Shown here piece after piece: positions 28,040 through 60,853 of a DNA stretch of 64,000 nucleotides. The position numbers and the translations under genes are program-made. Every line of letters begins with the position of its first letter. Position 1 is the stretch's first letter. The stretch lies in the sequence record PV340856.1; one strand, written 5' to 3'. Below the pieces are notes generated by a model. It was not told where the DNA came from and made no database searches. It saw only the letters and a list, made by a program, of their open reading frames with translations.

Positions 28040-28058
28040 TAATTAAAAAGGAGAAACA

Positions 28059-32492: not shown

Positions 32493-32532
32493 TACGTGAC
32501 TATCTTTATTATGATTTTTCTTTATCCTTCGT

Positions 32533-32539
32533 CTAAATA
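32533..32539 (+). promoter_or_regulatory. Probable late promoter CTAAATA
   Basis: About 20 bp upstream of the first Cys-rich gene. Confidence 0.55.
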
Positions 32540-32559
32540 AAACTAATCTAGGATCGTAA

Positions 32560-33342: not shown

Positions 33343-33354
33343 TAGAGGGAATCA

Positions 33355-34149
33355 ATGGCTAGCTATTTAAGTTACAAAAAAATTCAAGGCGATCAGTTAG
33401 AGGATAATATCCTCGACGCTGCTAAGTTCTCCACATCCCCGACTTCCACATTTGGAGTGAAGTGGATCTACGGGACAATGTGTCGTTGTTCTCCTGGTTG
33501 TTGTTGTCTTTGGACTGTACCTACTGGAGTTAAGAAACTCTGGATTCAGGCTTGGGGATCTGGTGGTAATGGTGCAGGTGCATGTTCTTGTAATAGATGC
33601 CAACACTATAGAGGTGCAGGCGGTGGATTTTATAATAGTGTCATGATTGATACTGTTGCAGGATGTCAGTATCGTGTCTGTGCAGGTGGTGTATATCCAT
33701 GTCTCTCTATAGAATGTTGTGGATGTATTGGTTGTGCATCATATGTTAATGGATATAACTTGAGCAACTTCTGTGCATATGGTGGTTCATGTGGTCACGC
33801 TAATAGTAGTTGGTCAACCTCATGTAACGCAACTTGGCATTGCTGTGTAGCACCAACATCTAATGGTGGTCAGTTTGGTATGGGTAATCTGCGTGACAGT
33901 TGGACCAATGGTGGATATTCCACTAACCGTGGCTGGTGTCACTGCTATGTTCAGATGACTAACCCAACTGCCGCTCCATTTATTGGAACAGAAGTTATTC
34001 AATCTATTCGTGAGTGCTGGATTCGTTGTGGTTGCTGGATCGTTCCTTATGGTAATGGTGGACAAAATGCAATGACTACCTATTGCGGACGTTGCTGTGG
34101 TCAAGGTGGTACTGGCGGTGGCGGTCTCGTCAAAATTACGTACTTCTGA
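33355..34149 (+). CDS. Cys/Gly-rich tail-associated protein, paralogue 2
   Basis: 264 aa, 28 Cys by hand count; same scaffold (WTVPTGVKKLWIQAWGSGGNG...GQGGTGGGGLVKITYF). Confidence 0.75.
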   Translation: MASYLSYKKIQGDQLEDNILDAAKFSTSPTSTFGVKWIYGTMCRCSPGCCCLWTVPTGVKKLWIQAWGSGGNGAGACSCNRCQHYRGAGGGFYNSVMIDTVAGCQYRVCAGGVYPCLSIECCGCIGCASYVNGYNLSNFCAYGGSCGHANSSWSTSCNATWHCCVAPTSNGGQFGMGNLRDSWTNGGYSTNRGWCHCYVQMTNPTAAPFIGTEVIQSIRECWIRCGCWIVPYGNGGQNAMTTYCGRCCGQGGTGGGGLVKITYF

Positions 34150-34166
34150 TAAATAACTATTAAATA
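34148..34166 (+). promoter_or_regulatory. Tandem late-promoter-like motifs (GATAAATA, TTAAATA) before paralogue 3
   Basis: Two TAAATA boxes in the 26-bp gap. Confidence 0.45.
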
Positions 34167-34175
34167 GGACTCCTA

Positions 34176-34973
34176 ATGGCTAATTACGCTTCTTATAAAC
34201 AGATTAGTAACTCCCAAATCGTTGATGGGTCTATTACAAACACCCAGTTAGTACAGGGCGCTTTCTCGAACTGGAACGTCAAATGGATCTATGGTGATGC
34301 ACAGGCAATGACATCTGGTTGTTGCTGTAATTGGACAGTACCTACTGGAGTCCAAAGGGTTTATTGGGAGCTCTGGGGTGCTGGAGGAAACGGACACGGA
34401 ACGTGTTCTTGTAATAGATGTTATAACTGGCATGGTGCTGGTGGAGGATACTATAACTCAAAATCAATGGGTGTCAGTGCTGGAGACAGTTACACTGTTT
34501 GTGCAGCTGGTGTTTATCGTTGTTGTTCCAGATCTTGTGTTGGATGTAGAGGATGTAGTTCCTATGTAAACGGAACTGGACTATCTAACTTCTGTGCTTC
34601 TGGTGGGACAAGAGGTTGTGCAACTAACTCTTGGAGTACTACTTGTTTCTCTGCATTCCAAGATTGCTGCGTTCAACCAGGAGCATGGGGTGGAGACTTT
34701 GCAATGGGTAACCACGCTGGTGGTACTAGAAAAGGATATGGTGGTGGTGGTTGGAACTGTCACTGTTACTATAACGAAAGTAGACCCACTGGTGCTCCAT
34801 TCATGGGTACTATGGGTGTCAACTCTGCTGTTAGACACTGTTGGGTTCGTTGTGGTTGCTGGAGAGTTCCTTATGCACACGGTGGTCAGGGCGCAGTTAC
34901 ATCTTACTGTGAAAGATGTTGCGGACAAGGTGGAACAGGTGGTAGTGGTGTTGTTAAAATCAGTTACATGTGA
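34176..34973 (+). CDS. Cys/Gly-rich tail-associated protein, paralogue 3
   Basis: 265 aa, 25 Cys by hand count; same scaffold (WTVPTGVQRVYWELWGAGGNG...GQGGTGGSGVVKISYM). Confidence 0.75.
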   Translation: MANYASYKQISNSQIVDGSITNTQLVQGAFSNWNVKWIYGDAQAMTSGCCCNWTVPTGVQRVYWELWGAGGNGHGTCSCNRCYNWHGAGGGYYNSKSMGVSAGDSYTVCAAGVYRCCSRSCVGCRGCSSYVNGTGLSNFCASGGTRGCATNSWSTTCFSAFQDCCVQPGAWGGDFAMGNHAGGTRKGYGGGGWNCHCYYNESRPTGAPFMGTMGVNSAVRHCWVRCGCWRVPYAHGGQGAVTSYCERCCGQGGTGGSGVVKISYM

Positions 34974-34994
34974 TCCATCATTAGTATTATTCAG

Positions 34995-35016
34995 ACCCCG
35001 AAAGGGGTTTTTTTTA
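34995..35016 (+). terminator. Rho-independent terminator with GAAA tetraloop
   Basis: ACCCC-GAAA-GGGGT followed by a T run. Confidence 0.8.
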
Positions 35017-35024
35017 TGTTTTTT

Positions 35025-35032
35025 TATAAATA
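35025..35032 (+). promoter_or_regulatory. T4-type late promoter TATAAATA
   Basis: Exact consensus immediately after the terminator and upstream of the chaperone gene. Confidence 0.75.
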
Positions 35033-35069
35033 ATCGAGAAGGACGTTAACCTGAAAAAATTTAACCACC

Positions 35070-35846
35070 ATGGCAACAGAAATTATTTCTCACGCTTGGA
35101 ACATGCCAGTTCCAAATGACTTCCTAAGAGATCACTCTTTTAGTGAAGGTAGAACAAGAGCCGTCAGTTATGACGGACCAGATAAGATTTGGCTTCAACT
35201 CGGTGCAGATGGTACTGAACTGTATGGTCCACTGACTGAAGATGATATGGCTGATGGGCGCCCAGTCCCAGCTGATGTTACTCAGATGTTTGAAGTAAAC
35301 TGTACTGAGTATCCTCTCATCTGTCAGTTAAGAGCACCAGTTATCAACGAAAGACAAGAAGATAGAAGTGTAGATGATGAAATTCGTCATCCAGATTGTC
35401 CTGATATGACTGCCCAAGGTTACAGGACCTTTACTTACAATGAAACTCTTTTTGTGGAAGACATCTATGACGCTTCAACTGTCAGAGTTGTTGATGGAGT
35501 TCCAACAGTTCATGCCTTTACCGTTAATGAAAAACTGATTGGTAGAGCAGATGATTTAACTTGGGATGATATCAGAGCTCATAGAAACTCTCTTCTAGAT
35601 GGTAGTGATCAATCTATTGCAGAGGACATGCCTGAAGATATGAAGAATACTTGGAAAGCATATCGCCAAAAGTTGAGAGATCTCCCTGCAGAGCTTGAGG
35701 CTGCTGGAGTTAGTCCAAATATTGCATACTATATGTTCCCACAACAGCCATTCTTTACTACTCCACCTTCTGATCCAGAACCACCTGCAGATGCATCTGC
35801 AGATTGGGCTCCACCAGAAAGTGGTGTTATGAATGGGGTTTCCTGA
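35070..35846 (+). CDS. Tail fibre assembly chaperone-like protein
   Basis: C-terminal WDDIRAHRNSLLDGSD...WKAYRQKLRDLP matches the phage tail assembly chaperone motif; follows fibre genes. Confidence 0.75.
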   Translation: MATEIISHAWNMPVPNDFLRDHSFSEGRTRAVSYDGPDKIWLQLGADGTELYGPLTEDDMADGRPVPADVTQMFEVNCTEYPLICQLRAPVINERQEDRSVDDEIRHPDCPDMTAQGYRTFTYNETLFVEDIYDASTVRVVDGVPTVHAFTVNEKLIGRADDLTWDDIRAHRNSLLDGSDQSIAEDMPEDMKNTWKAYRQKLRDLPAELEAAGVSPNIAYYMFPQQPFFTTPPSDPEPPADASADWAPPESGVMNGVS

Positions 35847-35866
35847 ATCTGATATATAATATGATT

Positions 35867-35890
35867 AGGGGGATTATATCCCCCTTTTTT
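35867..35890 (+). terminator. Rho-independent terminator-like hairpin
   Basis: AGGGGGAT-TAT-ATCCCCCT followed by TTTTT. Confidence 0.7.
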
Positions 35891-35903
35891 AATGGGAGGA
35901 ATT

Positions 35904-36536
35904 ATGTTTGAACTGAATGAATCTCGTAAAACAACAGTAAAAAAAGTCTACGATCATGCTAAAAATGAACTGGGACATGTATGGAGGTATGTAATTACTG
36001 TAGATGATTTTTATAAAAACCCAGATGAAGTGAGGGAGTTTGCTTTAAATTGTACCCCCAAAAAAGATAAAAAGTATACTGGCAATCTTATTGGGTCTAG
36101 AGTTGTTGAAGATGTAAATGGTTTTGATCAGAATTTAAGACAAGTTTTTGAAAAAGCATGTCAATTTGATTTTTGGAATCCAGAGTTCGATGAAACTTTT
36201 TGGAGAGACACAAAATTTATGGTAAATGTCACCACCTCAGATGATATTGAAACCAGATTTAATGAGAGAAAACACACTTATACATTCCATAAAGACTCCA
36301 CCAGTTATAAGTGGGCATCATTAATCTATCTCAATAAAGAAGAGGAGTGTGATGGTGGAACCAACTTTTATGCGTGGATGCCAGAAGATCCTTGCGCTAC
36401 ACCTAGATTGGAATATAGTATAGAAATGAAGTATAATAGAATGGTTTTATATGAGTGTGATCATATGCATGGAGCTGTCCTAAAAAAAGGTATGTTCAGT
36501 GATTTCCCGAGACTAACACAAGTGTTATTCATGTAA
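35904..36536 (+). CDS. 2OG-Fe(II) oxygenase-like protein (DUF6445-like), copy A
   Basis: GGAGG RBS before ATG 35904; VDDFYKNPDEVR, FHKDS (HxD), WASLIYLN, GGTNFY, MKYNRMVLY, HMHG, distal Arg. Confidence 0.7.
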   Translation: MFELNESRKTTVKKVYDHAKNELGHVWRYVITVDDFYKNPDEVREFALNCTPKKDKKYTGNLIGSRVVEDVNGFDQNLRQVFEKACQFDFWNPEFDETFWRDTKFMVNVTTSDDIETRFNERKHTYTFHKDSTSYKWASLIYLNKEEECDGGTNFYAWMPEDPCATPRLEYSIEMKYNRMVLYECDHMHGAVLKKGMFSDFPRLTQVLFM

Positions 36537-36545
36537 TTTTGGTGT

Positions 36546-36553
36546 ACTAAATA
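36546..36553 (+). promoter_or_regulatory. Probable late promoter ACTAAATA heading the modification-enzyme operon
   Basis: Same ACTAAATA variant precedes gp8 and gp19. Confidence 0.6.
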
Positions 36554-36596
36554 AATCAGAATAGATCATTCTTTATCATCCCGTTTGGAGTTGTAT

Positions 36597-37751
36597 ATGA
36601 GACCCAAGGCATTTTTTATTAATGGAGGAGCTGGCAGAGTACTTTGCTCCATCCCTGCATTTGAAAAATATGCAGAAGAACATGATGATTTTATCATTGT
36701 TGCTGAAGGAGGCACTGACTTTTTTAAGGGTCATCCCACCTTAGATGGTAAAGTCTATGATGTTTGGCACAAGAATTTGTTCCAAGAACATCTGAAACAC
36801 AGAGATTGTGTTTCTCCAGAACCATACAGAATGTGGCATTACTACAACCAGAAGTGTAGTTTGACACAGGCTTTTGATATGGAAATCAACGGTCTAGAAG
36901 AACCTAGAGAACTTCCCAAACCAACTCTCAACCTCACTAAGATGGAGGTTATTGCTGGTTACAATATGGTTCAGGAAGTAAAAGCAGTAACTGGTAAAGA
37001 TAAAGTAGTTGTTATCCAACCCTTCGGTAGAGGTGTCGAACAAGTAGGTGACTTTATTGCAGACGCTTCTTCTAGAAGCATGTCTCTAGTAAACACTGTA
37101 GACATTATCAATGACCTTAAAAAGGATTATGGTGTCATTGTCATGTCCGAAATTCAATTCCCTGTAGAAGAAAACGAAGATAAGTCTAAGTATAAAATTG
37201 CAAGACCCCAGATTGAAGACATTCGAGTTTGGGCATCTGTAATTGATGTTGCAGACCACTTCCTAGGTGTGGATAGTATTGGTCAACATATCTGTAAGGC
37301 TTTAGATAAAAAGGCAACCGTTGTAATCGGATCCACATATCCAGTCAATATTTCTTATCCAGAAGATAAGAACTTTGATATCATTGATATTGGTTTGGAT
37401 AAGAGAAAATATTCTCCCATTAGATTGACAATGGATGAAGCTGTTGATCGTTATAATGATCAATCAATGGAAATGTCTAAAGATGATATTAGTAAAGTTC
37501 TAAGTTCTGTTAGAAAAGCTATGGGCAAACCCGCTACTTTTAAGGGAACTTACACTCCTGTTCAACAACAGCAAGATTGTCCTACATGCCCACCAGGAAC
37601 TAAGACAACTCCCGCCGTTGCACCAGGAAGCGCTGCAATGATGCCGCAACAACAATGGAATCAACCACCAGTTATCGCGGAGAAACCCAAAAAACCAAAA
37701 GTAGGATTCAAACAGGAAGTAAAGAATCTCTTAAAGACTGAAACTAAGTGA
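36597..37751 (+). CDS. GT9-family (heptosyltransferase-like) glycosyltransferase
   Basis: N-terminal GGAGRVLCSIPAF...FFKGHPTLD and C-terminal VVVIQPFG...ASVIDVADHFLGVDSIGQHICKALDKKATVVIGST match GT9 motifs; GGAG RBS before ATG 36597. Confidence 0.7.
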   Translation: MRPKAFFINGGAGRVLCSIPAFEKYAEEHDDFIIVAEGGTDFFKGHPTLDGKVYDVWHKNLFQEHLKHRDCVSPEPYRMWHYYNQKCSLTQAFDMEINGLEEPRELPKPTLNLTKMEVIAGYNMVQEVKAVTGKDKVVVIQPFGRGVEQVGDFIADASSRSMSLVNTVDIINDLKKDYGVIVMSEIQFPVEENEDKSKYKIARPQIEDIRVWASVIDVADHFLGVDSIGQHICKALDKKATVVIGSTYPVNISYPEDKNFDIIDIGLDKRKYSPIRLTMDEAVDRYNDQSMEMSKDDISKVLSSVRKAMGKPATFKGTYTPVQQQQDCPTCPPGTKTTPAVAPGSAAMMPQQQWNQPPVIAEKPKKPKVGFKQEVKNLLKTETK

Positions 37752-37760
37752 GGTATTTAA

Positions 37761-39557
37761 ATGTCACAATGGATTGCGGCTATTGCCCGAGGACATAACT
37801 CGGGTCTTTGTCTCCTGAAAGATGGAGAAATTGTATTATCGATTGAGGAAGAAAGACTTTCTAGGAACAAGTATGATGGTGGTCCATATGCTTGTATGAC
37901 CAGAATCCTGGATTTTACTGACAAACTAGACTATCTTGTTATTGCACATACCCAACCACTAAGTGAGGCTGGTCATTGTGATTTTAGTGGAGATCCAATC
38001 TATGTTGCATTAGCAAGAAAGTTGGGGTTGATTGATAGACATGCAAACCCACATGAACATCCACAAGTTATTGACCTAAGTTCTACTCATCATAAACTTC
38101 ATGCAGCATGTGCATTTTATAGATCAGGTTTTGATCGCGCTGCTGCAGTTGTTGTTGATGGTGCAGGCACTTTTATTCCCATGAATATTAATGGGGAAAA
38201 TGAAATGACATGGGAACTAGAGTCCATGTTTAATTGTGAGTATCCATCCGAATTTAAAACTGTCTACAAGCACCAAGGTGGAAGAGGTCCATGGGGATCT
38301 ATTAGATTTGAAGAGTTTAGTAGTGAGAGAGAAGGTGAAGAAGGCACTCATGAGATGATTCTTGATGAGAGCGCTGGCATTACCAAAGCGTATGAAGCGG
38401 TAACTCAATATTGTGGTTGGGCACCTATCGAAGCTGGTAAGACTATGGGTTTATTCCCATATGGAAAACCCAACGATCATATTCCAGATGTATATACCGA
38501 TTATAATGGTACTGCAACATGGAAAACATCTAATAGGGACCTTATTGTACCAACCTATCCTAACGGTGCCGTAGTCAACCAGGGGCGGTTTAAGTTCCTT
38601 CAGACTGACTATGACTATGAAGGAGATAAGACCCTCTTAGAGAACCGTAGAGACATGGCATACGCCATTCAAGTAGAGTCTCAGCAAATGGTTTTGGATC
38701 TTATTCGTAAAGTTGTAGATATGACTGGTCAAACTAATGTTGTATTGACTGGTGGATATGCATTAAATTGTGTTGCTAACTATTGGTATCTTGAACAACT
38801 CAAAGATGAAGGTATTAACTTATTCGTAGAACCAGTAAGTAATGATGCTGGTACTGCAATTGGAGCAGCACTCCTTCAATATCATAGAGTAACGAAAGAT
38901 GCACAAGTCCGTGAACCACTAAAAACCCTTTATACTGGATTTGAATACATGTATGCAACCGATGAAATTGTAGATACTGCAGATAAGTATGAGTCTACGA
39001 GAGTCTTTGAAGCTACAAACAAAGATGTAATTGATCTAATTACCAACAAAAATATTGTTGCTGTTTTCCAAGGTAGATCTGAAGCTGGTCCTAGAGCACT
39101 GGGCAATCGTTCTATTCTATATGATCCTCGCGATCCTGATGGAAAAGACTTTGTTAATAAGGTAAAACGTCGTGAATATTTCCGACCATTCGCTGGGTCA
39201 ATTCTAAAAGAACATGTTCATGAATGGTTTGATCTTCGTGGCATGGATGAAACTCCATTTATGATGTATGCTGTTAAGTGTAAGGAGGGTATTGAGGAAA
39301 AAATTCCTGCAATTATTCACGTTGATGGAACTTGTAGAATCCAAACAGTCACTGAAGAACAGAACAAAAATTATCATGATCTGATTAGAGAGTTCTATGA
39401 ATCTACTGGTTGTCCTATTGTCTTCAACACTTCTTTTAATCTGGGTGGCGAGCCTCTCGTTGAAACACTTGATGACGCTTGCAGAACCCTCGCTAACTCT
39501 GATATTGAATACCTGTACTTGCCCGAATATGGTTTGATGATTGAGGTTAAAAACTAA
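37761..39557 (+). CDS. O-carbamoyltransferase (NodU/CmcH/TobZ family), full length
   Basis: GHNSG.CLLKDGEIV.SIEEERLSRNKYD, HHKLHA, GKTMGLFPYG, GGYALNCVAN, DAGTAIGAA, GRSEAGPRALGNRSIL, KRREYFRPFA, HVDGTCRIQTV, NTSFNLGGEPLV. Confidence 0.93.
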   Translation: MSQWIAAIARGHNSGLCLLKDGEIVLSIEEERLSRNKYDGGPYACMTRILDFTDKLDYLVIAHTQPLSEAGHCDFSGDPIYVALARKLGLIDRHANPHEHPQVIDLSSTHHKLHAACAFYRSGFDRAAAVVVDGAGTFIPMNINGENEMTWELESMFNCEYPSEFKTVYKHQGGRGPWGSIRFEEFSSEREGEEGTHEMILDESAGITKAYEAVTQYCGWAPIEAGKTMGLFPYGKPNDHIPDVYTDYNGTATWKTSNRDLIVPTYPNGAVVNQGRFKFLQTDYDYEGDKTLLENRRDMAYAIQVESQQMVLDLIRKVVDMTGQTNVVLTGGYALNCVANYWYLEQLKDEGINLFVEPVSNDAGTAIGAALLQYHRVTKDAQVREPLKTLYTGFEYMYATDEIVDTADKYESTRVFEATNKDVIDLITNKNIVAVFQGRSEAGPRALGNRSILYDPRDPDGKDFVNKVKRREYFRPFAGSILKEHVHEWFDLRGMDETPFMMYAVKCKEGIEEKIPAIIHVDGTCRIQTVTEEQNKNYHDLIREFYESTGCPIVFNTSFNLGGEPLVETLDDACRTLANSDIEYLYLPEYGLMIEVKN

Positions 39558-39964
39558 TGAAGACAGTTTTTGTTAATGGTACATTTGATATCCTTCATCC
39601 AGGACACATTGAATTATTTCGAGTAGCAAAGTCTCTTGGTGATCGTGTAGTCGTCGCTACTGATAGTGATGCTAAGATCAAAAAAGACAAGGGACCAACT
39701 AAACCGATTAATGATTTGTGTTATCGAGTATCAATGCTTAAGTCAATTAAGTATATTGATGTTGTTCATTATTTCCATGACAGATCTGGTTTGGAGAGTT
39801 TAATTAGGCTCTATAGACCAGATATTCTCCTTTTGGGGGGTGATTGGGAAGGCGGAGATGTTGTCGGTAAAGATCTTGCCAAAGAAGTTAGATTTCTTCC
39901 AAGAGTAGGAGACTACTCATCTAGTGCTGTTATTAATAAAATTCTAACAAATCATTCAACCTGA
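39557..39964 (+). CDS. hldC: Cytidylyltransferase-family nucleotidyltransferase (HldE domain II / HldC-like)
   Basis: GTFDILHPGH (HIGH-type motif), KDKGPTKPIN...RVSML..IKYIDVV, GGDW, YSSSAVINKI; adjacent to an HldE-type kinase. Confidence 0.8.
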   Translation: MKTVFVNGTFDILHPGHIELFRVAKSLGDRVVVATDSDAKIKKDKGPTKPINDLCYRVSMLKSIKYIDVVHYFHDRSGLESLIRLYRPDILLLGGDWEGGDVVGKDLAKEVRFLPRVGDYSSSAVINKILTNHST

Positions 39965-40749
39965 TGAATTATAATATATTAGTTATTGGCGACTCCTGTG
40001 AAGATGAATATATCTATGGAGATTGTTCTAGATTAAATCCAGAGGGACCCATTCCCGTTCTTGATAAAACTTCTACAGAAGTCAAGGCAGGAATGGCAGC
40101 AAATGTTAATGCAAACTTGAAGTCACTTGGAATTAAAACTAATCTAATTACTCAAAAAGAGACAATCAAAAAAACAAGATTTGTTGATAGAAAGAGTAAT
40201 TATCAATTACTTAGAGTTGATTCTACACCTGAGGTGACTCCTTTAAGCGCTCCTCAGGTCAAGATGGCATTCATGCACAGTCGATATGATGCATTAGTAA
40301 TATCCGATTATAATAAGGGGTTTCTTACAATCCAATCAATGCAGACTATTTGTACGTATTTTAGGGGTCCTATTTTCATTGACACTAAAAAGACTAAGTT
40401 ATTCCAACAATCTAATGTTTTTTACAAAATAAACAAGAAGGAATATGATCTACTTGATAGGGAATATATGCCCAGTGATACTAATCTAATCGTCACTTTG
40501 GGAGCAAACGGATGCAAATGGAGTGGTATCCATTTTCAACCAAGAACTGTCAATGTATTTGACGTATGCGGAGCTGGTGATACCTTTCTCGCGGCATTAG
40601 TTTCTGAGTTTCTTGTTACAAAAGATATGCAAAGGTCTATTGATCTTGCAAATAGAGCAGCTTCTATCTCTGTAGAAAACCCAGGAACATATCAACTAAC
40701 TAGATCTGATATTGAGAGGATTTATAATGAGCGAATTCAAACAACCTAA
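39964..40749 (+). CDS. hldA: PfkB-family heptose-7-phosphate kinase (HldE domain I / HldA-like)
   Basis: ILVIGDSCEDEYIYGDCSRLNPEGPIPV, GMAANV, QLLRVD, ISDYNKG, VFDVCGAGDTF, ANRAASISV parallel the E. coli HldE kinase domain. Confidence 0.85.
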   Translation: MNYNILVIGDSCEDEYIYGDCSRLNPEGPIPVLDKTSTEVKAGMAANVNANLKSLGIKTNLITQKETIKKTRFVDRKSNYQLLRVDSTPEVTPLSAPQVKMAFMHSRYDALVISDYNKGFLTIQSMQTICTYFRGPIFIDTKKTKLFQQSNVFYKINKKEYDLLDREYMPSDTNLIVTLGANGCKWSGIHFQPRTVNVFDVCGAGDTFLAALVSEFLVTKDMQRSIDLANRAASISVENPGTYQLTRSDIERIYNERIQTT

Positions 40750-41272
40750 TCCAATATTTTGGATGCCTTTCTTTATCGAACCAATCGATGTCGATAAATT
40801 AGAATTTAAAGAGGAACCAAACTATAAACCAACGTTTATTTCAAGAACTCCAACTACAATGGAGGAGGATTGTCTCACTGATGAATCATACAATTATCTT
40901 GGTAGATTGATTTGGGAATGTATTGGTCAATATACAGAAAAACCTTTTTTCATTGGTTCTGTTTGGCGTAATAAGTATGGAAAGACTGATTGGCAAGATC
41001 CACATATTCATTCTGGAGCTCAATGGAGTTTTGTAATTTACGTGGATGTTGAAGAGTCCAAGACAGTTTTTCTTTCTCCAAGCAGACACGATCAGATGAA
41101 TCAATGGGGATATTTGGGTAACGCATTTCCTATTGATTATTCACCTAAAGTTTCTCCTGGAAATATTATAATTTTCCCATCATTCATCGAACACTTTGTT
41201 CCCCCTGGAAATGAAGGTATAACTATATCAGGTAACATTTATTATGATCAACCCCCTGGAGGACCATGTTAA
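40727..41272 (+). CDS. Putative 2OG-Fe(II) oxygenase (TIGR02466-like)
   Basis: QDPHIHSGAQWSFVIYV...PGNIIIFPSFIEHFV...ITISGNI; start reassigned to ATG 40727. Confidence 0.7.
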   Translation: MSEFKQPNPIFWMPFFIEPIDVDKLEFKEEPNYKPTFISRTPTTMEEDCLTDESYNYLGRLIWECIGQYTEKPFFIGSVWRNKYGKTDWQDPHIHSGAQWSFVIYVDVEESKTVFLSPSRHDQMNQWGYLGNAFPIDYSPKVSPGNIIIFPSFIEHFVPPGNEGITISGNIYYDQPPGGPC

Positions 41273-42423
41273 AAAAACAAGTAGGGTTTAATCTGACACA
41301 TGATTCATCGGTATCAGTTTTAGATGAAGATGGTGACATAGAGCTTTTTGTAGAAGAAGAAAGATTAAGCAGAATTAAACATGATAGCATTCCATTCAAA
41401 GCATGTGATCTTGTTCTTGGTGGACTTACTTTGCAAGAGATTGAAAAATATGAACTGGGTGCAGGTGGATTAATATACAGAGATGAATATGGAGCAACAA
41501 AATTAAATACTTATTATGACCCACTGATTATTAATACTGTTAAATCATTAAAAACTGCCGTACAGGATCGCTCCATTGAAAACTATGAACTAATAAAGAA
41601 AAAATTTGATATATTTTATGAGCATCACTTATTTCATGCTTATTGTGGATTCTATAATTCTGGATTTGATGATGCAGTTACAGTTGTAGTTGATGGTATG
41701 GGAAATTCTGTAATTGATAATACGGGGTCTTTCAACGAAGATACAAATGAGGTTGCTTCAATATTCGATGCATCTTATCCAAAGAATATGAATTATTTGG
41801 GAGGAATGGCTACACATTCTACTCATAGTCCTTGGGAGAGTCAAAATACAAACCATGATGGTAATTGGACATGTGGAATTGGCATGGCATATTCTGCAGT
41901 ATCTGCTTACATGGGTTTTGGACAACTTGGATCTGGAAAACTAATGGGTCTTGCTCCGTATGGTAAAGAAGATCCAAATATTAGACCTTTTCTTCTTGAC
42001 AATGGATTTCATGTAAATTCATCTCTTTTTTATAGGACCATAAATGGATGTAATTTTGTTCCATATGATTATTTGCCTCGATGTGGAGATGGAGAATCTT
42101 TCGATATTGAAAATAATTTTGAAAAATTAGCTAATCTTGCTTGGAGGATTCAAGAAGATTTTCAGAAACACATGTTGAAAATTTTATTGGATGCTCTTAA
42201 AATGACAGGACGTAAAAATATTATTTTAACTGGTGGATGTGCTTTAAATTGTGCTGCAAATTACTGGTATTTGGATAAGTTGCCAAAAGATGTTAAACTA
42301 TATGTGGAGCCCATCAGTACTGATGCTGGAACTAGTCTTGGGATAGCCAAGGCTCAACATTATTCCAAAACTGGTTCCATGAAGAAACACCCACTTAAAA
42401 CCTTATACTTAGGACCCGAATGA
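41266..42423 (+). CDS. Carbamoyltransferase, N-terminal (Kae1-like) domain only
   Basis: THDSSVSV...EEERLSRIKHD, HHLFHA, GKLMGLAPYG, GGCALNCAAN, DAGTSLG; ends KTLYLGPE at the interdomain linker. Confidence 0.85.
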   Translation: MLKKQVGFNLTHDSSVSVLDEDGDIELFVEEERLSRIKHDSIPFKACDLVLGGLTLQEIEKYELGAGGLIYRDEYGATKLNTYYDPLIINTVKSLKTAVQDRSIENYELIKKKFDIFYEHHLFHAYCGFYNSGFDDAVTVVVDGMGNSVIDNTGSFNEDTNEVASIFDASYPKNMNYLGGMATHSTHSPWESQNTNHDGNWTCGIGMAYSAVSAYMGFGQLGSGKLMGLAPYGKEDPNIRPFLLDNGFHVNSSLFYRTINGCNFVPYDYLPRCGDGESFDIENNFEKLANLAWRIQEDFQKHMLKILLDALKMTGRKNIILTGGCALNCAANYWYLDKLPKDVKLYVEPISTDAGTSLGIAKAQHYSKTGSMKKHPLKTLYLGPE

Positions 42424-42746
42424 GATATAACGTGGATATAGACGGCACTATCTGTATTCCTGGAAAGGGAGAAGGTAGATATACTGAAGCTGTACCTATC
42501 CCAGAAAGGATCGCTAAAATAAATGATCTATATATTAAAGGACATCAAATAATCTACCATACTGCTAGAGGTATGGGTACATTTGATAATGATAGAGAAA
42601 AGGCTAAAGAAAAGTATTATGACTTCACCCTAAAACAGCTTCGCAGTTGGGGGTGTATGTTCCACGATCTTTTCCTAGGGAAACCTGCCGCCGACTATTA
42701 CATTGACGACAAAGGAGTAAACTCTGATGATTTCTTCAAGACCTAG
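42420..42746 (+). CDS. HAD-family phosphatase (EcbF/BcbF capsule-biosynthesis type)
   Basis: VDIDGT motif I, HTARG motif II, GKP..DYYIDDK motifs III/IV. Confidence 0.8.
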   Translation: MRYNVDIDGTICIPGKGEGRYTEAVPIPERIAKINDLYIKGHQIIYHTARGMGTFDNDREKAKEKYYDFTLKQLRSWGCMFHDLFLGKPAADYYIDDKGVNSDDFFKT

Positions 42747-43101
42747 AGCAGGGGAACCGATCAAATTCGTATCCAAAGGATGGGGATATGAAAAATGGAT
42801 CGTTAACTCCGAACAATATTGTGGTAAACTCCTTTTCATTGCAAAAGGAAAACAATGTTCTTGGCACTTTCATAAAAAGAAAGACGAAGTTTTCTACGTC
42901 CAAAGTGGAAAAATTAAAATCTACTATGGATGGGACGACAATATTGAGATGGCTAGTGTATCTGTCTTGGAACCAGGAGATAAGTTTCATGTTCCTATTG
43001 GAATGAAACATAGAATGTATGGTCTTTCAGATACTGAACTATTTGAGTTTAGTACAGAACACTTTGATGAAGACAGTAATAGAATTCAACCTGGGGATTG
43101 A
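42727..43101 (+). CDS. Cupin sugar(-phosphate) isomerase-like protein
   Basis: KGWGYEKWI...CSWHFHKKKDEVFYVQSG...PGDKFHVPIGMKHR: cupin HxH..E..H metal site of mannose-6-phosphate/D-lyxose isomerase-like proteins. Confidence 0.75.
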   Translation: MISSRPRAGEPIKFVSKGWGYEKWIVNSEQYCGKLLFIAKGKQCSWHFHKKKDEVFYVQSGKIKIYYGWDDNIEMASVSVLEPGDKFHVPIGMKHRMYGLSDTELFEFSTEHFDEDSNRIQPGD

Positions 43102-43706
43102 TGAAAGCAGAAAAGATAACTGACCTGATTGTGGTTTTGAAAAATCACATTCCAGATGATACCTGTGATGAAATACTAGAATGGTTTGAATTAAATAAAC
43201 ATCTACAAACAGATGGATGTGTTTATAGCACAGAAGGAGATCAAGATAAAGGTGCCAAAGTTGACAAAGATTTTAAGAATGCTATTCAAACTCTAGTTCC
43301 TCCAGGAGCATCTATCTCAGACAAAATGACAGAGATCACCATGTCTGCCTTCAGAGAAGCTGGTTCTAGATATCCAGTTCCAGAAAATAGTATGACCTTA
43401 AATGATTATTGCGTTAGAGTATATCCCAAAGACGAAGGGATATTTAAGACTCATGTGGATCAACACGCATTTGGAACCGTAAGTAGATTATTTGCTTGCA
43501 TTATGTATCTTAATGATGTTGAGATTGGTGGGGAAACTGAATTTCCAGACTGGAACATAGCAGTAAAACCAGAGAAAGGAAAAGTTTTATTGTTCCCATG
43601 CAATTATCTTTTCAAACATAAAGGCAATGTTCCTATCTCAAACGAAAAATATATTGCTACAAACTTCATTAACTTTATGATGCAAGATATTCCTCTAGTG
43701 TCTTGA
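43101..43706 (+). CDS. Prolyl-4-hydroxylase-like 2OG-Fe(II) oxygenase
   Basis: KTHVDQ (HxD), RLFACIMYLNDVEIGGETEF, VKPEKGKVLLFP, HKGNVPISNEKY; TGATG overlap with the cupin stop. Confidence 0.85.
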   Translation: MKAEKITDLIVVLKNHIPDDTCDEILEWFELNKHLQTDGCVYSTEGDQDKGAKVDKDFKNAIQTLVPPGASISDKMTEITMSAFREAGSRYPVPENSMTLNDYCVRVYPKDEGIFKTHVDQHAFGTVSRLFACIMYLNDVEIGGETEFPDWNIAVKPEKGKVLLFPCNYLFKHKGNVPISNEKYIATNFINFMMQDIPLVS

Positions 43707-44478
43707 GTCTATAATTCAACCATTCCATATCTGCACAGGTGTAGTCTTGATACTTACCTTTCAGATGATCAGGGAAAGGAATCATTTCGATTTCTCCCCC
43801 TTCTTTTTTAGCAATTAACTCTGCAACTCTCTGGAATGACATTGGTTTACCAGTTCCGATGTCATAGATTCCACTAGGAGCATCATTATTCATGACAATA
43901 TTGACTATATCATCTACACATACAAAGTCTCGATAAAACTTATCGGATCCTTCAAATAATTTTAGTTTTCCTGTCTCTTTAATCTGTTTAGTAAACTTTG
44001 AAACGGGACTTGCTTGATCTCCCTTATGGTCTTCACCAGTTCCATATACATTAAAATATCTAAATCCTTGGATACTCTCAAACCGATCTAGATTGTCCAA
44101 TACGTAATAATCTATGATTAGTTTTGAAATTGCATATTGATTTAAGGGATTTATTTTTCTACATTCTTTTGTTTGATTGCCATACACAGATGCTGAAGAC
44201 GCATACTTAATAGGAATCTTGTGTTCTATCGCATGAGAGAAGAGATGAGCAGTAAAGGTTTGGTTGTAGTGGGAGATCTTCATCCAGTTTTTTTCTGTAG
44301 TGGATGAGATTGCTCCATTATGAATGATTAGATCTACATTTTCCCAACCATTGAATTTAGCCATGAAATCCCATGCATTATCCATATCAATACCGATAAC
44401 GTCACGTTCTGCTTCATTCTCTAGGTATTTTAGGAAGTGAGATCCAATGAATCCCTTATATCCAGTAATTAAAATCAT
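43675..44478 (-). CDS. hldD: ADP-L-glycero-D-manno-heptose 6-epimerase
   Basis: ITGYKGFIG, HNGAISSTTE, YASSASVYG, PLNQYAISK, GFRYFNVYG, HKG, LFEGS..FYRDFV, YDIGTG, IPFPDHLKGKYQ closely parallel E. coli HldD. Confidence 0.9.
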   Translation of the reverse strand: MILITGYKGFIGSHFLKYLENEAERDVIGIDMDNAWDFMAKFNGWENVDLIIHNGAISSTTEKNWMKISHYNQTFTAHLFSHAIEHKIPIKYASSASVYGNQTKECRKINPLNQYAISKLIIDYYVLDNLDRFESIQGFRYFNVYGTGEDHKGDQASPVSKFTKQIKETGKLKLFEGSDKFYRDFVCVDDIVNIVMNNDAPSGIYDIGTGKPMSFQRVAELIAKKEGGEIEMIPFPDHLKGKYQDYTCADMEWLNYRLKTLEEYLAS

Positions 44479-45185
44479 CAGTATATTATCCTTGGAATAG
44501 GTAGAAATATTGATTGAGCGAGTCTATACACCTGTTGATCAAAGTGACCTGGATGTTGATATACACCATGAAGAAAATTATCTGGATATACAATCAATCT
44601 ATTGTATTTCATTTCTGCTAAGTGAACAAGTTCCCAAGGACCAACACTATCTCTTACAATATCTTCGTTCCAGATTCCAGATTGGTTTACATCAACACAA
44701 CTCATTCCCTTATAAGTATAAAATCCAGTGCCACCATGACATTCTTCTGGCGTGTTTAAATAAATTACACCTGCCCAACCCCTAACTAAATTTTTACTAT
44801 CTATAGGAGAATCTACGTGTGGAATAAGTACTTGATCTGATGCAGTTACATTTACCGAGAATGTAAGTTGTTTGCATCCAAAGACAAATCGTTCTTCTTC
44901 TTCTTTTGACAATCCATAAACTGATTTGGCTATGTCAATCCAGATTGGAACTAAATGATCAAGATCAAAATTTGCACTAACTCTACCACCTGGAACTGCT
45001 CCACAAATTCTTCGATTAAAAGTTGGAGGAATTCTTAGAGCCAAATCTCGAACCTGATCGGGATTTTTATAGAAGTTATCGATGTATACGATTGGTTTTT
45101 CTTCCCACCCCATTAACTCTACTCTTGCATCCAATTCATCATTGATTGCAAAGACTTCGGATTCATTTATAAAGTACTTTTTCAT
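44478..45185 (-). CDS. 2OG-Fe(II) oxygenase-like protein (DUF6445-like), copy B
   Basis: IDNFYKNPDQVR, PHVDS, WAGVIYLN, GGTGFY, MKYNRLIVY, FLHG, YRL; paralogue of 35904..36536; TGATG coupling to hldD. Confidence 0.7.
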   Translation of the reverse strand: MKKYFINESEVFAINDELDARVELMGWEEKPIVYIDNFYKNPDQVRDLALRIPPTFNRRICGAVPGGRVSANFDLDHLVPIWIDIAKSVYGLSKEEEERFVFGCKQLTFSVNVTASDQVLIPHVDSPIDSKNLVRGWAGVIYLNTPEECHGGTGFYTYKGMSCVDVNQSGIWNEDIVRDSVGPWELVHLAEMKYNRLIVYPDNFLHGVYQHPGHFDQQVYRLAQSIFLPIPRIIY

Positions 45186-45189
45186 GAGA

Positions 45190-45197
45190 CATAAATA
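45190..45197 (+). promoter_or_regulatory. Probable late promoter CATAAATA upstream of gp13
   Basis: TAAATA box 27 bp before the reassigned gp13 ATG. Confidence 0.55.
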
Positions 45198-45223
45198 TGT
45201 TGAGAACCCTATTATTATTAGGA

Positions 45224-46042
45224 ATGGCTAAGCCCTCCAGCAGAGAAGAATTGAAGCAATATTGCCTCAGGAAACTTGGAAAGCCAGTATTGGAAGTTAA
45301 CGTTGATGATGATCAAATCGAAGATCTGATTGACGATGCAATCCAATTATACCATGAAAGACATGGAGAGGGGATAGATCGAGTATTTCTTAAGCATAAA
45401 CTTCTAGAGACAGAAAAACAAACATTAGTGGGAATTGCTAGTACAACTACAGGTACAAGCAGCCACGGTGGTATTTCTATGATGGAATATGAGGAAGGTG
45501 CAAACTATCTTCCTCTTCCAGAATCTGTTATTGGAGTCAATAAAGTATTTAAGATCGACTCTTCCTCAGTGTCTGATGGATTGTTTAATATTAAATATCA
45601 ACTCTTCCTTAATGATTTATACTACTACGGAGCAGTTGATTTATTGAACTATTCGATGGTCAAGTCATACTTAGAAACTCTTGATTATCTAATCAACCCA
45701 GATGCACAGGTAAGATTTAATAAGAAAAATAATAGACTTTATCTAGATATAACCCTAAAGGACCTACAGAGCAATCACTATTTGCTCTTAGATTGTTACA
45801 GGATTGTAGATCCAGAAAGTGAGACTGCTGTATACAATGACCCATGGGTCAAGAGATATACAACGTCTTTAATTAAGAGACAGTGGGGTCAGAACCTTAT
45901 CAAGTTCCAAGGAGTTAAACTTCCTGGTGGACTTGAGATGAACGGTAGACAACTGTTTGATGATGCTCAAAGAGAACTTGAGGATCATGAACAGAAACTG
46001 ATGACCGAATACGCTATGCCACCTCTAGACATGATAGGATAA
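45224..46042 (+). CDS. gp13: Neck protein gp13
   Basis: MAKPSSREELKQYCLRKLGKPVLEVNVDDDQIEDLIDDA...WVKRYTTSLIKRQWGQNLIKFQGVKLPGG.EMNGRQ; start reassigned to 45224. Confidence 0.93.
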   Translation: MAKPSSREELKQYCLRKLGKPVLEVNVDDDQIEDLIDDAIQLYHERHGEGIDRVFLKHKLLETEKQTLVGIASTTTGTSSHGGISMMEYEEGANYLPLPESVIGVNKVFKIDSSSVSDGLFNIKYQLFLNDLYYYGAVDLLNYSMVKSYLETLDYLINPDAQVRFNKKNNRLYLDITLKDLQSNHYLLLDCYRIVDPESETAVYNDPWVKRYTTSLIKRQWGQNLIKFQGVKLPGGLEMNGRQLFDDAQRELEDHEQKLMTEYAMPPLDMIG

Positions 46043-48333
46043 TGCCCCTAAATCCATTTTTTCTACACGGTTCACCAAGCGAACAAAGATTGGTTCAGGA
46101 TTTGGTTAACGAGCATTTGAAAATGTTCGGTCAGGATGTTTTGTATATGCCTCGGAGGATTGTTAATGAGCAAACAGTTATTAAAGAAATAACTGCATCT
46201 AGGTTTGACGATAGTTTCCGACTCGAAGCATACTTAGTAAATTTTGATGGATTTGGAAGTCCTTCGGAGATTCTATCAAAGTTTGGTGTTAGATCGCAAG
46301 ATGAAATTCAGTTGGTCATTTCAAAGGAAAGGTATGATGATTTCATCTCTCCTTTGTTGAAGTTGTGGCCAGAGGATGAGATTAAAGTTGCTACTAGACC
46401 TCAGGAAGGAGATCTAATCTATCTTCCTCTAGATAATGCGTTATTTGAGATTAAGTTTGTAGAGACAAAAGTTCCTTTCTACCAACTCAATGATCTTTAT
46501 ATGTATGAATTAAGATGTGAAATCTTTGAGTATGAAGATGAAATCATTGATCTTCCAGATACTCTTGCTGGTGTAAATGGTGATGAGGTTATGGAGCCCA
46601 TTGGTATGGGGGGACAGTTTATATCCCTACAACTATCGAAAGATACGTACACCAATGCAACGGCTTCCGTATCTCTTGCTTCAACTATTTTTGGCACGAA
46701 ATCGGTACAATATATTAGATTGTTTGATGACGGTAATTATAAAGGAACTCCAACCGTATACATTTCAAAACCAACCAGAGGTAAACAAGCAACTGGTATT
46801 GCTACAGCGGTTAATGGACGTGTAAATGATCTAACTATTGATTTTGGCGGAACAAATTACATTCAGATTCCACAAGTAACGTTTACGCCACCAAACAGAA
46901 CAATAGCAACGCAAATAAAGTTTGGAAATAACTCCCTTTATCATGACAATGCTCAGGATACGGAGCAATCGAGATTTGAGTTCCCAACAAACATTGACTC
47001 TAGAGATACTGAGGATGGAAGATTGTCCTTTAGTATGTGGTTCTATCCAACCACGTTTACTCCGAACCCAAGTTATGGTGGAGTTATTTTGTGGTCTGAT
47101 AGAATCAAACTATACCATAGAGATTCTGGAACTGTAGTTTTTGCTTCTGGATCTACTGCTATTGAAAATCCAAATCCACTTACATTGAATACATGGAACT
47201 TCATTAGAATCGAACAGCATGGTTCCAATGCCAAACTCTGTGTGAATGGTAATCCTGGATCTGAATATAGTAATGCAGACCCAATCATGTTCTTTACGAA
47301 CAACCAATTGCATTATGGGGCTGATGCTTCTGGTCTAGGCAAACTAAACACAATCAGAGATGGATATATTGGATATCTCGATCACGTAACTCTCAATCTT
47401 ACTGGGGATACTTCTTTTAGAACTGATAGTGAATCTCTTGTCCCAACAACAACCTCAGAACAAGAAATAGATACACCAACGTCTAGAACAGCTCAGTTCG
47501 TTGAGAATTTAAATAACGAATATCCAGAAGTATATGCTTCTCTAAATGATGAGAGAGAAGTATCTGGTCTACAAATTGTTTATGGTGGTAGTGGATATAT
47601 TTCCGATCCATTGATGATTATCGAAAAACCAGATCTCGGTCAACAGGCAACAGCAGTTGCTATTATGACTAGCAGAACTGGAGTTCCCAATAAGTCAATT
47701 GATAGAATTCTACTAAACAACCCAGGAACTGGATATACGACTCCACCATCCATTACTTTTAGAGGTGGTAAGCCAACATCGGTAGCCATTGCTACTGCTA
47801 TAGTATCGACTGGTGTCCTCGGACCAGTTGGAATTGACACCGCTGGATTTGGATATAACTTTAAACCAACTGTAGGAATCACTTCTGTGTTTATTCCTCA
47901 GTCTGTTGATACTACAGACTTGATTAAAAATGCAAAAGCAGAATCAGTCGTAAGTACAGGATCTAGTATTACAAAAATAAGATTCTCGAATGCAGGAACT
48001 GGATATACATCCGTAATACCAAACATAGAAATTGAAGAAGTTATAAATCCAGTCTTTGGCGACTTCGTAATTGGTGAATCTGTAAGAGGAGTTTCTAGTG
48101 GAACTAGTGCAATTGTTGCTTCTTGGGATGCTGGTAACAGAATCCTCAAGCTTGGAAATGCAACTGGAGATTTTCAATTTGGAGAAACAATCGTTGGCGC
48201 AGGAGCTAGTCATACTATTGCAAGTTTCTTTAATGAGTATGATGATAATGGATTTGCATCTAATGATGATATTGAGTTTGAAGCTGATCAAATTATAGAC
48301 TTCACAGAGAGGAATCCTTTTGGGGAAGTCTAA
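46042..48333 (+). CDS. gp14: Neck protein gp14 with large internal insertion (LamG-like domain)
   Basis: MPLNPFFLHGSPSEQRLVQDLVNE...PQEGDLIYLP...FYQL..LYMYELRCEIFEY and C-terminal IIDFTERNPFGE; 763 aa. Confidence 0.88.
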   Translation: MPLNPFFLHGSPSEQRLVQDLVNEHLKMFGQDVLYMPRRIVNEQTVIKEITASRFDDSFRLEAYLVNFDGFGSPSEILSKFGVRSQDEIQLVISKERYDDFISPLLKLWPEDEIKVATRPQEGDLIYLPLDNALFEIKFVETKVPFYQLNDLYMYELRCEIFEYEDEIIDLPDTLAGVNGDEVMEPIGMGGQFISLQLSKDTYTNATASVSLASTIFGTKSVQYIRLFDDGNYKGTPTVYISKPTRGKQATGIATAVNGRVNDLTIDFGGTNYIQIPQVTFTPPNRTIATQIKFGNNSLYHDNAQDTEQSRFEFPTNIDSRDTEDGRLSFSMWFYPTTFTPNPSYGGVILWSDRIKLYHRDSGTVVFASGSTAIENPNPLTLNTWNFIRIEQHGSNAKLCVNGNPGSEYSNADPIMFFTNNQLHYGADASGLGKLNTIRDGYIGYLDHVTLNLTGDTSFRTDSESLVPTTTSEQEIDTPTSRTAQFVENLNNEYPEVYASLNDEREVSGLQIVYGGSGYISDPLMIIEKPDLGQQATAVAIMTSRTGVPNKSIDRILLNNPGTGYTTPPSITFRGGKPTSVAIATAIVSTGVLGPVGIDTAGFGYNFKPTVGITSVFIPQSVDTTDLIKNAKAESVVSTGSSITKIRFSNAGTGYTSVIPNIEIEEVINPVFGDFVIGESVRGVSSGTSAIVASWDAGNRILKLGNATGDFQFGETIVGAGASHTIASFFNEYDDNGFASNDDIEFEADQIIDFTERNPFGEV

Positions 48334-50128: not shown

Positions 50129-50135
50129 ATGTCTT

Positions 50136-52278: not shown

Positions 52279-52366
52279 AGTGTTCATGCATTGTTTCCCC
52301 ACTTAAAAACTAGCAAATTCTAAATAATAACAGATAAAAAATGGACTTCTTCAAGAGGAACTAACA

Positions 52367-54811: not shown

Positions 54812-54819
54812 TTCATACC

Positions 54820-54827: not shown

Positions 54828-54850
54828 ACAGTACAAGAGGTTAACTAGCC

Positions 54851-60833: not shown

Positions 60834-60853
60834 TCCAAGTTTCACATTTTTTC

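Follow-up and report, generated by a model that had tools for sequence, protein, structure and literature searches.

An ADP-heptose, glycosyltransferase and carbamoyltransferase cassette in the tail module of Synechococcus phage Sf-FS3: a candidate system for fibre-tip decoration

In the inner core of Pseudomonas lipopolysaccharide (LPS), ADP-L,D-heptose, GT9-type transferases (WaaC/WaaF) and a putative carbamoyltransferase of the NodU/TobZ family (WapO/PA5005) together yield 7-O-carbamoyl-heptose (PMC8005017). Here, we describe the same trio of functions in a phage, within a DNA stretch of 64,000 nucleotides (the window) that matches the genome record of Synechococcus phage Sf-FS3 (PV340856.1) at 100% identity; window positions correspond to record positions minus 62000. 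Sf-FS3 is a T4-like cyanomyovirus with a 216-kb genome, obtained from a sponge, with Synechococcus WH8102 as isolation host. Its cassette lies in the tail module, between a tail-fibre chaperone gene and the neck gene gp13, and very probably supports the synthesis of ADP-L,D-heptose, its transfer and the subsequent O-carbamoylation of the sugar. As acceptor we favour the phage's own Cys/Gly-rich fibre-tip proteins over a host receptor, with a probability of roughly 0.45.

Several differences from the Pseudomonas core were observed. The Sf-FS3 host lacks the acceptor Kdo-lipid A, the cassette has a single transferase and no core kinases, the transferase scores under the Pfam GT9 threshold, and a late box precedes the genes, whose site is the tail module of a phage. 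A second comparison is offered by the autotransporter heptosyltransferases TibC and AAH, GT9-like enzymes of the GT-B fold that use ADP-heptose for cytoplasmic O-glycosylation of adhesins and whose genes adjoin the adhesin gene. Likewise, the fold matches of the Sf-FS3 transferase include TibC, and its gene is near those of candidate substrates; these neighbours, however, are phage fibre-type Cys/Gly-rich proteins and not beta-helical autotransporters with Ser repeats. To our knowledge, no carbamoylation is known in the TibC/AAH system. In mycobacteriophages, transferases encoded in the structural region decorate the phage's own virion proteins, as proposed here, but other transferase families and sugars are involved, the targets are capsid and tail-tube proteins, and neither a dedicated nucleotide-sugar pathway nor a carbamoyl group takes part. 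Virion glycosylation in mycobacteriophages and protein heptosylation in bacterial autotransporters are already known.

Heptose genes of cyanophages were reported between 2005 and 2010 as "LPS genes" (PMC3037559; also PMC7378029). The cyanomyovirus clusters of this name (T4-GCs 304, 305, 307 and 308; P-SSM2, S-SM2, S-SSM7) contain the same heptose genes as Sf-FS3, and Sullivan et al. (2010) noted their co-occurrence and probable functional linkage, leaving the function open ("stuffer DNA" or functional) (PMC3037559). In that work, the fibre-linked form with GT9 and carbamoyltransferase genes was not split from the polysaccharide-cluster form, and no link to Cys/Gly-rich proteins was drawn. The literature we searched contained no description of a separate fibre-linked form, of a strict pairing with Cys/Gly-rich fibre proteins, or of phages from other families bearing the transferase clade in their tail modules.

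Probable genes for heptose synthesis, transfer and carbamoylation

A first-pass annotation of the window had placed twelve enzyme genes between the tail-fibre chaperone and gp13, and all 12 open reading frames returned enzyme-type matches. The tight packing it described for nine plus-strand genes (36597-43706) was also recovered, with junctions consisting of overlaps of 1-23 bases or a single 9-base gap. The genes assigned to the heptose and carbamoyl functions are the following:

36597-37751, plus strand: divergent GT9-superfamily glycosyltransferase, 384 amino acids (fold search, family profile, donor motif)
37761-39557, plus strand: CT1, full-length TobZ/NodU-type O-carbamoyltransferase, 598 amino acids (Pfam Carbam_trans_N 7e-29, Carbam_trans_C 5.5e-62)
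39557-39964, plus strand: HldC-like heptose-1-phosphate adenylyltransferase, 135 amino acids (TIGR02199 rfaE_dom_II 1.5e-32; HPGH at residues 14-17)
39964-40749, plus strand: HldA-like heptose-7-phosphate kinase of the PfkB fold, 261 amino acids (TIGR02198 rfaE_dom_I 3e-41; DVCGAGD at residue 200)
41266-42423, plus strand: CT2N, carbamoyltransferase paralogue, 385 amino acids (Pfam Carbam_trans_N 1.1e-23, no C-domain; TobZ 1.1e-16)
42420-42746, plus strand: small HAD phosphatase, 108 amino acids (TIGR01689 3.8e-8; PDB 9iqw 3.9e-9; DxD at residues 6-8)
42727-43101, plus strand: metal-binding cupin, 124 amino acids (Pfam Cupin_2 6e-9; metal site H47/H49/E54/H95)
43675-44478, minus strand: HldD orthologue, ADP-L-glycero-D-manno-heptose 6-epimerase, 267 amino acids (PDB 1eq2 3.5e-49, 2x6t 2.1e-48)

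The glycosyltransferase matched no Pfam family above threshold (Glyco_transf_9, PF01075: 12.4 bits, E 0.095, cut-off 22), and neither the single sequence nor a close-family profile gave a useful PDB sequence match. A profile search against 1.84 billion representatives returned 515 clusters, from which 60 diverse full-length members were taken. Forty of these individually match Glyco_transf_9 (E<=0.1; best 1.2e-8), and the 60-member profile matched WaaF (E 0.012) and WaaC (E 0.035) in the PDB across the nucleotide-sugar donor motif. Residues D226 and H231 are invariant among the 60 relatives and align with the motif D-(S/T)-G-x-x-H in the C-terminal domain of WaaF/WaaC. Through a Foldseek search with the AlphaFold model, the best matches were the GT9 structure 3tov (E 1.4e-5), WaaC, WaaF and TibC, with probabilities of 0.97-1.0; the TibC match (E 3.3e-4, template-modelling score 0.37) was no better than those to WaaC or 3tov. 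Judged from the sequence and its predicted fold, the enzyme appears to be a divergent relative of the GT9 superfamily whose membership the Pfam criterion does not demonstrate. Its earlier designation as GT9 stands at the level of fold, family profile and donor motif, and not as Pfam membership, for which it is a remote call. Gene context suggests ADP-heptose as the donor, since in the loci compared the cyanophage form always adjoins an ADP-heptose pathway.

At the C-terminus of this enzyme (residues ~315-384), a variable, disordered Pro/Gln-rich tail with a CxxC is followed by a Lys-rich stretch and a short amphipathic motif. The tail is missing from AG-345-O18 and from the Vibrio/Aeromonas homologues described below. 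It could serve as a membrane or partner-docking peptide; for a membrane anchor, its conservation is too weak to decide.

Both domains of CT1, the Kae1-like N-domain and the YrdC-like C-domain, exceed their Pfam cut-offs, and the protein matches the PDB entries of its family with E-values from 1e-45 to 1e-57 (7xb6 1.6e-56, NovN 1.3e-47, TobZ 6.9e-46; GdmN was also matched). CT2N consists of the Kae1-like N-domain alone and is thus not a complete NodU/TobZ family member; only some related loci carry it, and we consider it accessory. The two carbamoyltransferases named in the first-pass annotation are therefore both matched to the family, with CT1 complete and CT2N reduced to the N-domain. A third carbamoyltransferase gene of Sf-FS3 is located elsewhere in the genome, near a second glycan cluster (see below).

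The earlier assignment of nucleoside diphosphate-heptose synthesis to this locus is supported by the HldA-like, HldC-like and HldD family matches and by the phosphatase, and on inspection of the sequences the catalytic motifs are complete throughout the pathway enzymes. For the HldA-like and HldC-like proteins, TIGR02198 and TIGR02199 are the best families, yet the scores lie under the NCBIfam equivalog cut-offs. The HldD orthologue possesses both the GxxGxxG and the YxxxK motif. Its gene is convergent with an oxygenase gene (ox3, below), overlapping it by 32 nucleotides. Almost all related loci that extend to this gene have it on the minus strand as well, S-SM2 and P-TIM68 being the exceptions; this orientation stands out in genomes where nearly all genes are on the plus strand. 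In the S-CAM3 locus, an intact HldC-like frame (12845-13231, L005), recovered as a single 129-residue tblastn segment, is unannotated in the RefSeq record.

Compared with the canonical GmhA-HldE(HldA/HldC)-GmhB-HldD pathway, Sf-FS3 shares the HldA-like, HldC-like and HldD-like enzymes and a phosphatase, but the phosphatase comes from a different small HAD subfamily and a cupin is proposed in place of GmhA. The phosphatase belongs to the EcbF/BcbF capsule type (TIGR01689, capsule biosynthesis phosphatase) and not to the GmhB family, and is a candidate for the GmhB step. The label "phosphoheptose isomerase" carried by 42420-42746 was rejected, the protein being a HAD phosphatase; this mislabel has spread over cyanophage records, including those of Sf-FS3, S-SSM7, P-SSM2, S-CAM3, S-SM2 and others.

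No GmhA of the SIS type was found in the cassette, and none is annotated in positions 1-50000 and 62001-216248 of the record (50001-62000 were not inspected). The cupin may act as sedoheptulose-7-phosphate isomerase in its place, because it shows weak matches to cupin-type aldose-ketose (sugar) isomerases and co-occurs with the heptose module. It was identified in 35 phage records, with 57-74% conservation, nearly all of which also contain the heptose kinase, and in every annotated cupin-bearing record it adjoins heptose-pathway genes. No homology was seen between the cupin and the mannose-6-phosphate isomerase of S-SCSM1, a phage absent among the tblastn matches of the cupin.

From these family assignments we infer the following order of steps. 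The cupin would isomerise sedoheptulose-7-phosphate to D-glycero-D-manno-heptose-7-phosphate, which is the weakest step of the scheme; the PfkB kinase would form the 1,7-bisphosphate, the small HAD phosphatase would take off the 7-phosphate, and adenylylation by the HldC-like enzyme and C6 epimerisation by the HldD orthologue would give ADP-L-glycero-beta-D-manno-heptose. After transfer of the heptose by the GT9-like enzyme, the YrdC-like domain of CT1 would form carbamoyl-AMP and its Kae1-like domain would carbamoylate a sugar hydroxyl, while CT2N may attach a second carbamoyl. Heptose and Kdo are both absent from the LPS of Synechococcus WH8102 (PMC4515613), so that the host lacks the classical GT9 acceptor and the donor pathway has to come from the phage. 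The acceptors would be the Cys/Gly-rich distal tail-fibre proteins encoded upstream, modified in the cytoplasm during fibre maturation, and the fibre tip would thereby be shielded or its binding tuned.

Linkage to fibre genes and the late box

The fibre/adhesin block, the signals between it and the cassette, and the right boundary are listed below:

28059-32492, plus strand: long tail-fibre protein, 1477 amino acids, heading the fibre/adhesin block (phrog_9851 tail fiber, E=0)
32560-33342, plus strand: G1, Cys/Gly-rich fibre-tip-like protein, 260 amino acids, 28 Cys (Pfam Gly_rich_2 27.1 bits, cut-off 24.3)
33355-34149, plus strand: G2, Cys/Gly-rich paralogue, 264 amino acids, 28 Cys (phrog_4205; composition)
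34176-34973, plus strand: G3, Cys/Gly-rich paralogue, 265 amino acids, 25 Cys (AlphaFold2 model, pLDDT confidence 69.5)
34993-35010, plus strand: terminator-like hairpin and T-run after G3
35070-35846, plus strand: tail-fibre assembly chaperone, 258 amino acids (Pfam Phage_tail_APC 5.3e-11; PHROG tail fiber assembly matches)
35867-35885, plus strand: terminator-like hairpin and T-run in the spacer between the chaperone and the first oxygenase gene
36546-36553, plus strand: T4-type late-promoter-like box ACTAAATA, 51 nucleotides before the GT-like start
45197-46042, plus strand: gp13 neck protein, right boundary (73.6% identity to S-SSM7 gp13)

The candidate acceptors are rich in cysteine (9-12%) and glycine (16-18%), with 10.8% Cys and 16.9% Gly in G1. 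The best PDB matches of the G3 model were the fibre of cyanophage Pam3 (7ypx, E 3.2e-5), Bxb1 tail-tip chains and the glycine-rich domain of ALK/LTK. Composition, the Gly_rich_2 match and the fibre and tail-tip model matches together indicate that these are fibre-type virion proteins. G1-G3 (32560-34973) are tandem paralogues with CCC runs, and the family is large in sequence sets from the sea, one search of marine metagenomes giving 388 clusters.

In a survey of ~464 cyanomyovirus records, the Cys/Gly-rich family was present in exactly those complete genomes that carry the GT9-like gene. The heptose module, the GT9-like gene and CT1 occur together in Sf-FS3, S-SSM7/S-SSM6a, S-CAM1/3 and P-SSM2/5, and this fibre-linked form is located directly 3' of a block comprising the long fibre gene, two or three Cys/Gly-rich genes and the chaperone. 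The long tail-fibre gene is syntenic in S-SSM7, P-SSM2, S-CAM3 and 80 IMG/VR loci, the latter being fairly close relatives (at least 60% identity). The order Cys/Gly-rich, chaperone, GT9-like, CT1 is kept in Sf-FS3, S-SSM7, S-CAM3 and P-SSM2, and likewise in all of the 80 IMG/VR relatives that extend far enough. It is constant despite a differing right flank, which is gp13 in Sf-FS3 and S-SSM7 and a further fibre gene in P-SSM2 and S-CAM3. The heptose module of AG-345-O18 has been relocated, but the transferase and CT1 genes still follow the Cys-rich genes and the chaperone. The association with fibre and Cys-rich genes anticipated in the first-pass annotation was thus observed, both as presence in the same complete genomes and as the same order in relatives.

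Shorter GT9-like homologues were identified within the tail modules of three unrelated phage groups: between tail fibre and tail protein genes in an N4-like Vibrio phage, inside the tail module of D505-type Vibrio phages, and between a fibre-like protein gene and the sheath gene of an Aeromonas myovirus. These homologues have no heptose genes nearby, and the adjacent tail protein contains segments with 7-10 Cys per 100 residues.

The number of ACTAAATA copies in the window (4 observed, 3.7 expected) is not significant in itself; three of the four, however, fall in the intergenic 1.8% of the window (binomial estimate ~2e-5). As previously described, the box is shared with gp8 and gp19, its distance to the start being 39 nucleotides for gp8, 51 for the GT-like gene and 31 for gp19, and the spacing at the GT-like gene is also comparable with that before gp18. 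The fourth copy (21362-21369) lies within gene SfFS3_91, 154 nucleotides ahead of the next start, for which TATAAATA at 21466 is the better-placed box. The chaperone gene has TATAAATA 45 nucleotides upstream. The wider motif [AC]TAAATA has 26 matches on the plus strand of the window (12 wholly intergenic) and 0 on the minus strand, sigma-70-type promoters show no enrichment in the window (55 found vs 56 expected), and the genome is annotated with gp33 and the late sigma factor gp55. Sequence features of this kind suggest that the plus-strand cassette genes are most likely transcribed late, together with the structural genes. The strand and promoter arrangement given earlier needs amendment in two respects. 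Nine genes do follow the box, but 2 of the 12 have minus-strand orientation and lack a late box; and the first gene of the cassette (35904) is preceded by a terminator hairpin, with no separate box in front of it.

The enzyme cassette (36000-46000) has a G+C content of 35-38.5%, the fibre/adhesin block (28000-36000) 42-45% and the genome 38.7%. Base composition shows no sign of recent transfer of the cassette, its content being close to that of the genome, and the excess in the fibre block fits Gly-rich coding and does not point to a foreign origin of the cassette. Beyond gp13, the gp14 neck-protein homologue (46042-48333) has 763 amino acids, of which ~180 match the Pfam T4_neck-protein model (278 positions), and residues 322-448 form a Laminin_G_3/concanavalin-A-like lectin domain.

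Oxygenases and the choice between acceptors

Four genes of the 2-oxoglutarate (2OG)-Fe(II) oxygenase type are part of the twelve-gene set, in agreement with the first-pass count:

35904-36536, plus strand: ox1, DUF6445-type 2OG-Fe(II) oxygenase, accessory (DUF6445 5.9e-8, 2OG-FeII_Oxy_3 1.5e-5; HxD...H)
40727-41272, plus strand: ox2, 2OG-FeII_Oxy_5/TIGR02466-type, accessory (Pfam 9.8e-9; HxH in place of HxD)
43101-43706, plus strand: ox3, 2OG-FeII_Oxy_3 (prolyl-4-hydroxylase-type), accessory (Pfam 3.9e-10; HxD...H)
44478-45185, minus strand: ox4, DUF6445-type oxygenase, 235 amino acids, accessory (Pfam DUF6445 6.5e-15; HxD...H)

The iron triad HxD/E...H is intact in ox1, ox3 and ox4, whereas ox2, which is found in only part of the related loci, has HxH. 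A PDB search with DUF6445 was uninformative. The first-pass annotation had proposed an obligatory pathway in which the oxygenases hydroxylate fibre residues, the new hydroxyls are heptosylated and the heptose is carbamoylated. In favour of this scheme, four oxygenase genes lie within or at the edge of the cassette vs an estimated ~0.8 expected (19 in ~276 genes), three have intact triads, and ox3 is of the prolyl-4-hydroxylase type; hydroxylation followed by glycosylation has a precedent in mimivirus collagen. The cassettes of S-CAM3 and AG-345-P14, however, contain no oxygenase, the number, type and position of these genes differ among the 80 related loci, and ~19 of them are scattered across the Sf-FS3 genome, including the replication, tRNA and auxiliary-gene regions. 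Moreover, collagen-like G-X-Y runs, a possible substrate, are present in no structural protein of the window, and Ser/Thr are plentiful in the candidate acceptors, so that extra hydroxyls are unneeded. An obligatory hydroxylation step is therefore improbable, and this is the part of the earlier reading that did not hold; its heptose, GT9-like and carbamoyl content, late-type box, tail-module site and co-occurrence did. The 2OG oxygenases are accessory, optional additions rather than a required first step, and may add tailoring in some lineages.

Elsewhere in Sf-FS3 (PV340856.1 22298-30921), two 2OG oxygenase genes directly follow, on the 3' side, the gene of a 2423-residue peptidase-S74 fibre-like protein, which counts in favour of the obligatory scheme. 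In the same region, an oxygenase and a JmjC protein come after a block of large immunoglobulin-like proteins. Oxygenase genes may be associated with fibre genes more generally.

The fibre-tip proteins are favoured as acceptor because the pairing with Cys-rich genes recurs independently of lineage and because the enzymes follow the chaperone and the late box. A number of observations weigh against this reading. The transferase scores too low for the Pfam GT9 threshold, and the poor quality of its model (pLDDT 62) keeps the template-modelling scores at just 0.35-0.42. Enzymes of the LPS type (WaaC) and of the protein type (TibC) are not distinguished by the fold matches, the catalytic Asp13 of WaaC is aligned with Arg14 in a weak, negatively scoring stretch, and the basic amphipathic C-terminal motif of the cyanophage enzyme might anchor it to a membrane. 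A box within 120 nucleotides upstream of the transferase gene is present in only 44 of 81 related loci; the minus-strand HldD and ox4 genes lack a late box, and a search for a conserved promoter of this pair found none. The five-gene heptose module of S-SM2, S-T4 and P-TIM68 is located in large polysaccharide-type clusters far from fibre genes; these are multi-glycosyltransferase clusters near hli genes, with neither a GT9-like gene nor a carbamoyltransferase. Counted as independent genera, the co-occurring lineages come to only about four or five. For the characterised enzymes of the TobZ family, the substrates are small molecules or oligosaccharides, and we know of no direct evidence that a cyanophage virion carries a glycan of any kind. 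An enzyme masking the receptor of the fibre, finally, would be expected just as much to be linked to fibre genes.

This last point leads to the host envelope, where a lipid-linked glycan, for instance the LPS core or a different surface polysaccharide, would receive the carbamoyl-heptose. The receptor of the neighbouring fibre tips would thus be hidden, sparing progeny from loss on debris or blocking superinfection. Most of the GT9 enzymes characterised so far are heptosyltransferases of LPS synthesis, and WaaF and WaaC are the best sequence-profile matches here. The basic amphipathic motif behind a flexible linker and the co-inheritance with a receptor-binding protein family are also as expected of such an enzyme. 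Carbamoylated HepII is a normal component of the Pseudomonas LPS core, attributed to the putative carbamoyltransferase WapO (PMC8005017), and the heptose module is present in other cyanophages' polysaccharide-type clusters, long read as LPS genes (PMC3037559). Nevertheless, WH8102 LPS, being free of heptose and Kdo, does not offer the usual acceptor, the cassette resembles structural genes in its location and late box, and the homologues in Vibrio and Aeromonas phages are surrounded by the genes of tail operons. In T-even and T5 phages, exclusion functions are usually early. The cassette includes a single transferase, and neither a flippase nor a polymerase nor any further membrane protein is encoded there; moreover, a polysaccharide-type product is already served by a separate cluster beside the hli/psbA region (PV340856.1 185186-196880 and 204738-206258). 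That second cluster encodes three fucosyltransferase-like enzymes, a GT25, a galactosyltransferase, a UDP-glucose dehydrogenase, methyltransferases and an oxygenase; with such a multi-glycosyltransferase cluster in the auxiliary-gene region, the single-transferase cassette looks like a different function. Modification of the host receptor is thus the main rival to the fibre-tip reading, and the less probable of the two.

Two further products were considered. A free carbamoylated heptoside or small glycoconjugate, with no acceptor on virion or envelope, would agree with the natural-product tailoring performed by all solved relatives of CT1 (TobZ, NovN, GdmN) and with the reported use of ADP-heptose in septacidin-type antibiotics (PMC9978623). 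Scaffold genes (non-ribosomal peptide synthetase, polyketide synthase or nucleoside enzymes) are absent, and it would be left unexplained why the genes adjoin fibre genes so strictly in several families of phages, which makes a soluble product very improbable. Transfer of heptose to a modified base of the phage DNA is the least credible of the alternatives. Some phage DNA glycosyltransferases do have the GT-B fold and 2OG oxygenases can oxidise bases, but only ThyX, and no deoxynucleoside monophosphate hydroxymethylase, is annotated in the inspected parts of the record (1-50000 and 62001-216248). In addition, a late-type box and a site in the tail module do not suit enzymes that make DNA precursors, sequencing and assembly were routine for Sf-FS3 and its relatives, and homologues in N4-like and other phages are within tail operons.

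Meaning for cyanophages and related tail modules

In a broader form of the fibre-tip reading, which we advance as tentative, a dedicated phage clade of GT9-like enzymes would put carbamoyl-L,D-heptose on Gly/Cys-rich fibre-tip proteins as a widespread, unrecognised virion modification. Attachment of the sugar would be through oxygen or possibly, at the abundant cysteines, through sulphur. Cyanophages would bring the pathway in full since their hosts lack it, and Vibrio and Aeromonas phages would have the transferase only.

The "LPS genes" of cyanophages have been unexplained since 2005-2010 and are abundant in ocean metagenomes, where the GT9-like family alone accounts for more than 3,400 sequence clusters. 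If the host receptor were the target, the cassette would represent a late-acting receptor-masking system co-inherited with matching adhesins, which would also be new for cyanophages. If the fibre tips are decorated, this would be the first protein heptosylation beyond bacterial autotransporters and the first carbamoylated protein glycan, and the presence in a phage of all the steps towards a sugar that its host never makes would be accounted for. Host recognition by very abundant marine viruses would then depend on a sugar that is unreadable from the fibre sequence.

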